Assembly (NCBI GenBank): GCA_907165135.1
Contig: OU015567.1
Coordinates: 13,206,001 to 13,270,000, forward strand
Direction: 5' to 3'
Origin: Oikopleura dioica
Lineage: Eukaryota > Animalia > Chordata
Length of the DNA stretch: 64,000 nucleotides
The notes below the pieces were generated by a model that ran no database searches, was not told the DNA's origin, and was given only the letters and a program-made list of their open reading frames with translations. The first letter of the stretch is position 1, and the number at the start of each line of letters is the position of its first letter. Position numbers and translations under genes: made by a program. Positions 35,464 through 38,490 of the stretch are shown here, piece after piece.

Positions 35464-35922
35464 TTTGATCGAAATCCATTCTCCTTTACCTCTGTTGGTG
35501 GAGGCAGGCCAACGCCACTGCAGGATCTGAGTCGCCCACCTCTCTTGTTATTTGGAACACCCGAAATCTAATAATGATTAGGGCCTGAAAAGAATTCTTT
35601 CAAATAGAAACCTTTAGTGCAAATCAGGATCTTTAGTAAGGTGATTTGGTAATTTTTGTACAAAACGCGGTTACCTAAGGTGATCAATTTCTCGGGGCCG
35701 ATTCGCTTGTCATCTAAAATGCGAGAGAAATTGATTTTGCTACGGAATTATAAAAATAAAATTGAAAGGAATTAAAAAACATAAATCAAGAAATGTCAAA
35801 AATTGAACAGAATTGGAAGGAGAAGTAGAATTATGAGGTCAGTGCAAATATAACGGGGAAAGGAAGGAGAATCATGGCACATTTGTGGACAGAAAGGAAT
35901 CAATGAATAAGGAGATGAACTG

Positions 35923-38134
35923 TTATGCTGGCTTCTTTGGCATGACTCCAGATTCGGCATCGGAGATAATGTTCCAAACATCGAGTATGAACTGATCGGT
36001 GAAGGCGAACATTGGATATGAACTAAATGATGGAAAAATGTTTTTACCAAACTCAAGCACAATAGACGAACCTAGTAACTGTATCGAGGAAAGTCCCAGA
36101 ATCAGAGGACTTCGTTCCACTTTCATAAATGGACAAGGAAAGCTCTCGATCTCTGATCCCAACGTACTCTTCCAGCATTTGATCGATGATTTCAATTGCT
36201 CTAATAATTAGGGTAAATCACTAATAATTGAGCTTTTTTTTGGGCTTAGTAGGGTAGGCATATAATACCGTTTTAGAAAGCCCAGGAGCTGAGGATCATT
36301 TTGACTATTGATACTTGGGGGTGATCTCGTACCCTGAGGGCATTTTGATACCTCCAAAGTCCCAAAATCTGGCCAATTTCGGAAAAGGGAATTTTGAAGC
36401 CTTAACTCGACCTTTCAGAGGTTGTTTACTATCCCAGATTGTAGCCCAGGCTCTGACGGTCATTTTGAGCTAAAGAAAAGTAGTGAGGAGGGGGTTCCTG
36501 AGGAGCTAGAAGCTCTTGAAGTTGAGGAACTCGACAAAATTGAGTACTTTTTCACAAAAGTACAGGATTTGTATCACAAATGCCTATAAAAGACTTTTTA
36601 TCAATATTTATTTATTTAAAAATAATTGAGATGTCATTTGAGGTCATCTGAGGTCACTCTAGGTCAAATCCATGAAAACGAAAATTGCGAAAAGTGACCC
36701 GATATGACCTCAGATGACCCCAGATGATTTCTCGAACATTTTTTTGTGGAGAAAGATGGATAAAAAGTCTTTTATAGGCATTTGTGATACAAATCCTGTA
36801 CTTTTTGTGAAAAAGTACTCAATTTTTGTCGAGTTCCCCAATTTCAAGAGCTTCTAGCTCCTCAGGAACCCCCCCTCCTCACTACTTTTTTTTAGCTCAA
36901 AATGACCGTCAGAGCCTGGGCTACAATCTGGGATAGTAAATAACCTCTGAAAGGTCGAGTTAAGGCTTCAAAAATTCCCTTTTCCGAAATTGGCCAGATT
37001 TTGGGACTTTGGAGGTATCAAAATGCCCTCAGGGTACGAGATCACCCCCAAGTATCAATAGTCAAAATGATCCCCAGCTCCTGGGCTTTCTAAAACGGTA
37101 TTATATGCCTACCCTACTAAGCCCAAAAAAAAAGCTCAATTATTAGTGATTTCCCCTACTAATAATAGAAATAATGATGATAACACATGTCTCTCTTACG
37201 AGGTTTTGCAGGGTTTGTCTCCTTCTACAACTTCGGCGTCTCCGTTGGCCTTGATTCTAACCGTCATACCGCCCTTGTTGATGTCGCCAGAAACTTTCGC
37301 TTTGGAGCGTCCACCGACCATGTTGAAACCGCGGACTGGAGGCTGGAGCACAAATTCGACCATGCTACCTATTTCAACATCTCGTAGCTTTCTTGCAACA
37401 TCGATATGTCGTTTTCCGATCATAACTGAATACCGTGAATATAACAAATGGGCACGATATATTTATTACCTTCGCCATTGATGGAAAGAATCGCATCACC
37501 GGGTAGAATATCATCGTTGTGTTCTACCACACTTCCAGCTCGTTTTCCCTTGACAAAAGCTTGGCCGTTCCCGTTGTCAGTAATGGTAAGGCCAAACATT
37601 TGAGAGACCTTCTGGACATTGATGACGGTGGTCGTAGGAGCCGACACGTGGCAGTAGAGGAAGTCGCCAAACATGATCTGGCCGCCGAGCAACTTTGTCA
37701 TGTCGCATTTTTCGGTGTTAACTAATTCATGGATATATGTTTTTATCATAAAATAAATTACCAGTAACAAACAGAATCTTATTAACATCAACTCCAATAG
37801 CCTCAGCCATTCGAAGATAGAGTTCTTTGATATTTCTGAAATTTCTGACTTCGCAAACAGGACCCCCATGCGCTAGCTGACAATCAAATCGAATCTCAAC
37901 AGGTTGAGCTGCTGCGGATTGCTGAGAAGGCATGGGATTGGCGCTGGGCATTGGATTGTTTGATGGCTTGCGCGGGATTTTTAAGAGTAATTTTAGACGA
38001 TTTTCTAGATTTATGAAATCAAGGAAGAGAAAGAGTTATTATCAGATGATTCAGAATCTGAATTTCAGATCCCTTATCATTGGTATAGGCGGTGCTGGAG
38101 CCTTCTTCTTTTTCTTTCCTAGACCGAACACCAT
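35923..38134 (-). CDS. GIPC1: GIPC PDZ adaptor (GH1-PDZ-GH2); the GH2 exons lie beyond a foldback insertion
   Basis: N-terminus MVFGLGKKKKKAP (cf. MPLGLGRRKKAP); FDCQLAHGGP; PDZ FGLTITDNGNGQAFVK; GH2 AIEIIDQMLEEYVGIRDREL...FAFTDQFILDVW in 35923-36200. Paralogue number is nominal. Confidence 0.92.
36209..37158. mobile_element. Foldback-type non-autonomous element, ~395-bp near-identical arms, TAGGG termini, 8-bp TSD (hAT-like signature)
   Basis: Arms 36209-36602 and 36759-37158 are reverse complements with few mismatches. TSD ctaataat at 36201-36208 and 37159-37166. Confidence 0.95.
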
Positions 38135-38490
38135 CTTATCTGAATTCTAACCTATGAACACAGCTTTCTTTATCAAGGTAAATTGATAGGATTCAACTCA
38201 AAACTTAAAAAAGCGCAGATAGAGATTGATTATATTTTCAATAAAACGATACATACAAGAATTTAAAAATCTAAACATGAAACGGGGAATAATTAATGAA
38301 TCAAATTCAAACTTGTTTCTAATGCATAATTTTTGCATTTGCGATATGAAAACGAGTTACATGTAAGATTTTCTATAATTTGGAAAGGTTCTTTTTGTTT
38401 TGTTCCAGTTCAAATAATACAGTTTTCATATCAACATTCTCCAAAGGTAATTAATTGAGCAGCAGAAAAACAATGGGGATGGTCTTGAAT

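Follow-up and report, generated by a model that had tools for sequence, protein, structure and literature searches.

A foldback transposon insertion duplicates the 3' splice acceptor of an intron in the GIPC gene of Oikopleura dioica

In the window, by which we mean the whole 64,000-nucleotide stretch of Oikopleura dioica DNA that was analysed, a short transposon sits at the 3' end of an intron of the GIPC gene, and the duplication of its target site has left a copy of the splice acceptor on each side of the element. Comparison of the window with the rest of the genome and with related lineages showed that the transposon insertion, the duplicated acceptor and the empty ancestral site are real. 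As it stands, what GIPC carries is a young, ordinary insertion of a transposon at a splice site, of a kind that is already known. Our preferred interpretation, in which we place about even confidence, is that it represents a young, possibly heterozygous or polymorphic, hypomorphic GIPC allele captured in an assembly made from one animal, with the proximal of the two acceptors dominant. The insertion would then be passive and would not constitute a regulatory device.

The host is a GIPC gene on the minus strand with the domain order GH1-PDZ-GH2, which was recognized by searching the exons one by one against profiles PF25083, PF00595 and PF25082; several exon scores fell below the Pfam whole-protein cut-off because the exons are short. 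The upstream exons (37468-37900), which encode GH1 and the first part of the PDZ domain, matched PF25083 (E = 8.5e-12), the PDZ profile and residues 56-137 of the GIPC1 structure PDB 5v6b (E = 3.8e-17). The next exon (37200-37425) encodes the end of the PDZ domain and the linker and ends in phase 2 as ...K-T-(TC), as judged from its reading frame and from orthologous Tara open reading frames of 66-92% identity. On the other side of the insertion, the GH2 exon (36072-36200, beginning A-I-E-I-I-D-Q) matched PF25082 positions 26-66 (E = 1.4e-7) and residues 11-41 of the GIPC1 GH2 structure PDB 5v6e; it is followed by a 49-nt GT-AG intron inside GH2 (36023-36071) and by the last exon (35923-36022), whose reading frame carries the end of GH2 (PF25082 positions 73-91) and closes with a stop codon at 35925-35923. 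GH2 profile positions 26-91 are encoded downstream of the insertion, and both downstream exons are intact. We searched a genome of 64,281,565 bases in 19 contigs, with the window on a contig of 16.16 Mb, and the GH2 profile matched at the GIPC locus only; as GH2 was found nowhere else in the genome, GIPC is single-copy.

The intron that received the element (37159-37199, minus strand) is an ancestral GT-AG intron of 41 nt and phase 2, with its donor GT at 37199-37198 and its original, proximal AG at 37160-37159; it remains intact over its full length, and related lineages have an intron of 44-45 nt at the same place and in the same phase. Its last eight bases, ATTATTAG on the coding strand (37159-37166), are the first copy of the target-site duplication and form the proximal acceptor. 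The second copy (36201-36208), past the element, forms the distal acceptor, which is the only productive one, and the empty-site alignment described below resumes there. A third copy (36221-36228), 20 nt upstream of the distal acceptor and inside the 3' terminal repeat, is present in nearly all members of the transposon family and constitutes a decoy acceptor. A preliminary description of this DNA had claimed the duplicated acceptor, further copies in the terminal repeats and the products of the two flanking acceptors, and these claims held up when the frames were read. Joining donor 37199 to the distal AG at 36201 defines a 999-nt intron and restores K-T-S and the GH2 frame (K-T-S|A-I-E-I-I-D-Q-M-L-E-E-Y-V-G), which leads into the exons that match the GH2 profile and structure. 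Joining it to the proximal AG at 37159 gives S-R-G-N-H-stop on translation, and joining it to the decoy AG gives S-D-L-P-stop. The element-bearing intron lies about 10 residues into GH2, and the product of the proximal AG would lose almost all of that domain. Rescue by recursive or second-step splicing after use of the proximal AG was considered and rejected, as such splicing would not recreate a GT, and G...AG ends are lacking in every window of the duplication.

A search with the open reading frame of the upstream exon retrieved seven relatives from marine metagenome assemblies (Tara), at 66-92% identity and none of them from the window's own lineage. In the closest of these (L047; 92% protein and about 80% DNA identity), a 44-nt GT-AG intron of the same phase is directly followed by the A-I-E-I-I-D exon, and the sequence ceases to align with the window precisely at the element and aligns again from the distal ATTATTAG. 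A more distant lineage (L048 and L050) has a 45-nt intron at the same site with no element, and in a third lineage (L052-L055; 73% protein identity) the same intron is about 230 nt long and is followed by an intact GH2 exon. These empty sites in related lineages indicate that the intron is ancestral, that the distal AG marks the ancestral exon boundary and that the element is lineage-specific, and the upper bound that they would set on the age of the insertion is a loose one. Within the longer intron of L052 (about 1665-1895), 127 bp with imperfect inverted ends lie in mid-intron between 8-bp direct repeats, TCCGGATC, and the native 3' intron end is untouched; the extra DNA in L052-L055 is possibly an independent small hAT-like element. 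The 49-nt intron inside GH2 also varies among these lineages: it is lineage-restricted, being found in the window and in L047, whereas an uninterrupted exon takes its place in L048 and in L052, and it represents a lineage-specific gain or loss.

The element itself is 950 bp long (36209-37158), with hAT-like ends of the form TAGGG(G/T)AAATCAC that were recognized from its inverted repeats and its family relatives; on the minus strand it begins with TAGGGGAAATCAC and ends with GTGATTTACCCTA. It is non-autonomous and of the foldback type, in that it consists almost wholly of its inverted arms and has no coding capacity. The first-transcribed arm (36803-37158) pairs with the second-transcribed arm (36209-36559) at 96-100%, and the paired segments, counting those nearer the middle, measure 162 nt (99%), 112 nt (96%), 50 nt (96%), 24 nt (100%) and 101 nt (85%). 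The arms of about 395 bp around a spacer that were initially proposed must be corrected to a near-whole palindrome, with about 350 nt per arm that are 96-100% complementary, about 100 nt more at 85%, and a central loop of about 48 nt.

At least 58 members of the family to which this element belongs are present in the genome, and they range in size from 150 bp to 5.8 kb. The genome search recovered fragments as well as at least 25 relatives that are full-length and 73-86% identical, and the family terminus occurred 116 times, as against 0 for a control pattern. A perfect 8-bp duplication flanked all 38 of the other paired members that were examined, and this, with the empty sites of related lineages, places the duplication at GIPC beyond coincidence. 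The centre of the duplication was AT in 58 of 60 events, giving a symmetrised consensus, (C)TnATnA(G), that is itself palindromic, and among 98 oriented flanks T occupied position 2 in 58 and A occupied position 7 in 53. An AG directly abutted the terminus in 16 of 38 events, where 4.4 were expected (p = 2e-6). The AG-ending duplication at GIPC can thus be attributed to the target preference of the family, with its likeness to a 3' splice site.

Judged by its 8-bp duplication and its TAGGG ends, the element appears to belong to the hAT superfamily, of which it would be a non-autonomous member. Ac-type elements have a terminal motif of the C/TAGGG kind and the target consensus nTnnnnAn. The ends of the present family read TAGGG(G/T), and its strongest target signal, the central AT, departs from the textbook hAT pattern. 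No autonomous partner combining the family ends with a hAT transposase was found in the genome. A hAT dimerisation domain occurs there in seven near-identical copies (C1:636914, 641782, 732634 and 737494; C5:13847453; C4:380299 and 393172), in an element that measures about 4.4 kb and has internal tandem repeats and the left end CAGGGTGTCAAATCG; these transposase copies were rejected as the partner, as they have other ends and the family terminus is absent nearby. The 5.8-kb family member L033 (C5:1564672-1570504) was rejected as well, since its open reading frames have no Pfam or transposase domain; its arms enclose about 4.9 kb of additional sequence. Two further loci, L005/L007 (C4:1142832-1145175) and L063 (C4:4336508-4338423), are twin or nested copies with inverted rather than direct flanks, that is, composite palindromes of family members.

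Within a single copy of the family the two arms are 98-100% alike, as against an identity of often 84-91% to the nearest other copy (26 full copies among L001-L032), and the GIPC copy follows this pattern, with 98.5% identity between its own arms (over the outer 400 nt) and 88% to the nearest other copy. This comparison suggests that the arms of one copy evolve in concert or regenerate from one another, and such concerted evolution rules out the use of arm divergence as a clock. The closest relative of the GIPC copy is a 306-bp solo arm elsewhere in the genome, at 98.7% identity. The perfect duplication, the similarity of the arms and this nearly identical solo arm lean toward a young insertion. 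On the other hand, the arms differ by 1.5%, and the insertion could for that reason be less than extremely young, which would weigh against a strongly harmful allele.

Whether such an allele could enter the reference depends on the assembly, which we infer to be OKI2018_I69, from Okinawan Oikopleura dioica. The source of OKI2018_I69 was a single male, about 3.6% heterozygous; HaploMerger2 reduced an initial version of 99.3 Mb to 64.3 Mb by merging, and the assembly was polished with about 100x short reads (PMC8008620). Its two largest scaffolds are autosomes (PMC8008620), and the 16.16-Mb scaffold that holds the window is among those two. As the source was one heterozygous animal whose haplotypes were merged, an insertion carried by one haplotype could stand in the reference. 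The same history bears on the possibility that the insertion is an assembly artefact, namely a palindromic long-read chimera misplaced in the gene. Palindromes can indeed arise in long-read sequencing, but the ends of the element at GIPC are exact and typical of its family, the preferred motif is duplicated perfectly over 8 bp, 38 other members share its architecture, and the published assembly was polished in the manner just described, so that we regard an artefact as extremely improbable.

The hypomorphic allele that we favor would arise as follows. A non-autonomous, hAT-like foldback element inserted, in this lineage only, into its preferred motif, which here happened to be the last eight bases of a 41-nt intron, and full-length GIPC can be made only when donor 37199 pairs with the distal AG. 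The intact 41-nt intron is transcribed about 1 kb before the distal site, and, in a genome whose introns measure about 49 nt, recognition of the intron as a whole should choose the proximal AG in a large share of transcripts. Under the first-AG rule, a spliceosome assembled on the native branch site would likewise take the proximal AG. The premature stop in the proximal product would lead either to mRNA decay or to a protein consisting of GH1 and PDZ only; since the stop lies upstream of a spliced intron, the transcript is a likely target of decay. Use of the distal AG would need either a new branch site, placed in the final 20-30 nt or so of the element and downstream of the decoy, or a stem that brings the distal AG beside the proximal one. 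The intact downstream exons and the single-copy status of the gene must be set against a hypomorphic allele, as they would fit a tolerated insertion just as well.

A tolerated insertion of this sort is the close rival to our interpretation, and we hold it to be a serious possibility, although one that falls short of an even chance. The donor would pair with the distal AG, the intron would simply have been expanded from 41 to 999 nt, and GIPC would be made normally, either by means of a branch site in the 3' end of the element or because the stem draws the distal AG near the original branch site. The latter route would have a precedent in yeast, where hairpins are reported to reduce the effective distance from the branch point to the 3' splice site (bioRxiv 10.1101/2022.07.22.501175). 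Harmless expansion would also agree with the conservation of this single-copy gene and its intact GH2 exons, and the two acceptors are equivalent in that they are identical over 8 nt and have similar pyrimidine content upstream. The 1.5% divergence of the arms may mean that the insertion has some age. However, the proximal AG is the first AG, still has the tract and the branch site native to it and precedes the distal one by about 1 kb in transcription, and the distal acceptor must further compete with a third, identical decoy 20 nt upstream of it. The lineage in which the same intron has reached about 230 nt and kept an intact GH2 exon appears to favor tolerance, but it is no true parallel, as its extra DNA lies in mid-intron and leaves the native 3' end untouched.

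The long stem that the preliminary description expected was recovered in the predicted RNA fold of 36150-37250, which consists of one stem that takes in the element from its first base to its last (-800 kcal/mol). The proximal AG is predicted to be placed immediately 5' of this stem, with the distal AG 8 nt beyond its 3' side, and the ATTATTAG of the terminal repeat is the only acceptor copy buried in the stem. The description had gone on to propose a hairpin-controlled switch, in which folding of the arms chooses between full-length GH1-PDZ-GH2 and a truncated GH1-PDZ protein ended by an AATAAA in the element, possibly modulated by editing or dicing. Several observations are compatible with this proposal: both acceptors are present and their products are as stated, the predicted stem spans the element end to end and would hide the terminal-repeat decoy, genes with an adenosine-deaminase domain are present in the genome, and structure-dependent choice of 3' sites is reported in yeast (bioRxiv 10.1101/2022.07.22.501175). 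However, masking of the competing AG by structure was not found in the predicted fold; with the proximal AG outside the predicted stem, folding would leave it unmasked, and the hairpin could not switch it off.

The proposed terminator fared no better than the masking. An AATAAA is indeed present, and in fact twice, as two overlapping copies on the minus strand in the central AT-rich part of the element (36607-36616). About 0.6 such motifs are expected by chance per strand in 950 AT-rich bases, and only about half of the other copies have a central AATAAA, so that a role as designed terminator was rejected on grounds of both chance level and lack of conservation in the family. The element is moreover an ordinary member of a family that occupies at least 58 places, its absence from related lineages means that any such regulation would be very recent, and the truncated transcript, with a stop before a spliced intron, would likely be a target of decay. 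We therefore consider a hairpin-controlled switch at GIPC very unlikely.

RNA reads were also inspected. Four raw RNA runs, which carry the same species label but come from another lineage, were mapped on 35500-38400 at an identity of at least 90%. Nearly all of their reads were 90-95% identical to the window; depth was 0 over 36761-37536 and at most 0.4 near 36200, no joint was reported across the GIPC intron, and these runs are uninformative on acceptor use. A few poly(A) reads from the other lineage were placed over 36567-36760, where they matched only the element centre and had foreign sequence on both sides, indicating that they derive from related elements transcribed elsewhere in that lineage.

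The insertion has likenesses to, and differences from, several known systems. Wessler and colleagues reportedly found that maize Ds/Ac (hAT) insertions are spliced out via sites in the element ends, and that the resulting alleles are often leaky and not null. As at GIPC, the maize cases involve a non-autonomous hAT element and an outcome set by the choice among cryptic or duplicated splice sites. The maize insertions, however, are in exons and come with RNA evidence, whereas the GIPC element lies at an intron acceptor and is a near-perfect 950-bp palindrome. The intron stems of yeast (bioRxiv 10.1101/2022.07.22.501175) offer a likeness on paper, in that the predicted GIPC stem would leave no more than about 8 nt between the distal and the proximal AG and would hide an internal AG, but a yeast stem comprises tens of base pairs, between the branch point and the one AG that is used, whereas the GIPC stem would measure about 450 bp and follow a fully competent first AG. 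Galileo and FB of Drosophila (PMC2775673, PMC10990002) resemble the GIPC family in consisting almost entirely of inverted arms, in lacking a transposase and in having arms that are more alike within one copy than between copies; the GIPC family differs in its 8-bp duplications, its hAT-like TAGGG ends and its (C)TnATnA(G) target.

Introners, or introns derived from MITEs, have been described in Micromonas and Aureococcus (Huff et al. 2016) and in the larvacean Fritillaria borealis (Henriet et al. 2019), as reviewed in PMC11282704. Like the GIPC element, introners are DNA transposons, short and non-autonomous, with inverted ends, whose target duplication supplies a copy of the 3' AG, and their hosts are, like Oikopleura, marine organisms with many young introns, Fritillaria being a related larvacean tunicate. 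Unlike an introner, the GIPC element entered a GT-AG intron that was already there and relies on the donor of its host at 37199; the 5' end of its own transcribed strand is without GT. Judged by its sequence, the GIPC element would fail to qualify as an introner, since the insertion did not supply both splice sites.

Other copies of the family do have splice-like signals in both ends. The 5' ends of the T-variant copies (L003, L009, L026 and L031) read TAGG|GTAAAT, with GTAAGT in L031, so that they contain GGTAAAT or GGTAAGT, and nearly every family 3' end has ATTATTAG at 12 nt from its end. On paper, a T-variant copy would form a GT-AG intron whose removal would preserve the frame and leave 24 nt (4 + 12 + 8). 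At GIPC, the transcribed-strand 5' end of the element is of the G variant, TAGGGGAAAT, and hence has no GT. One T-variant copy, L009 (C3:1903444-1904402), is associated with an open frame of 945 codons and was considered as an insertion in a host exon; it was rejected, as the frame is that of a retroelement pol (reverse transcriptase and RNase H). L009 is nested in this retroelement on a 2.9-Mb scaffold. It is conceivable, although we judge it unlikely, that the family acts as a proto-introner, its splice-site-like target motif and a predicted stem that juxtaposes the duplicated AGs allowing it to settle at introns and to lengthen them.

The median intron of Okinawan O. dioica measures 49 bp (PMC8008620). 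The GIPC locus places, in a chordate whose spliceosome is tuned to introns of about this length, one donor before three identical acceptors, of which one is in the native intron, one is buried in a predicted stem of 450 bp and one lies just past that stem, and it thereby provides a clean natural experiment in which first-AG choice, intron definition and RNA structure are set against one another. The duplication of the acceptor is itself explained by the AG-ending target motif of the family. If the distal AG is used because of the stem, then this transposon family of a chordate would offer a practicable way for introns of 41 nt to grow to 1 kb, and would represent a proto-introner in Oikopleura.
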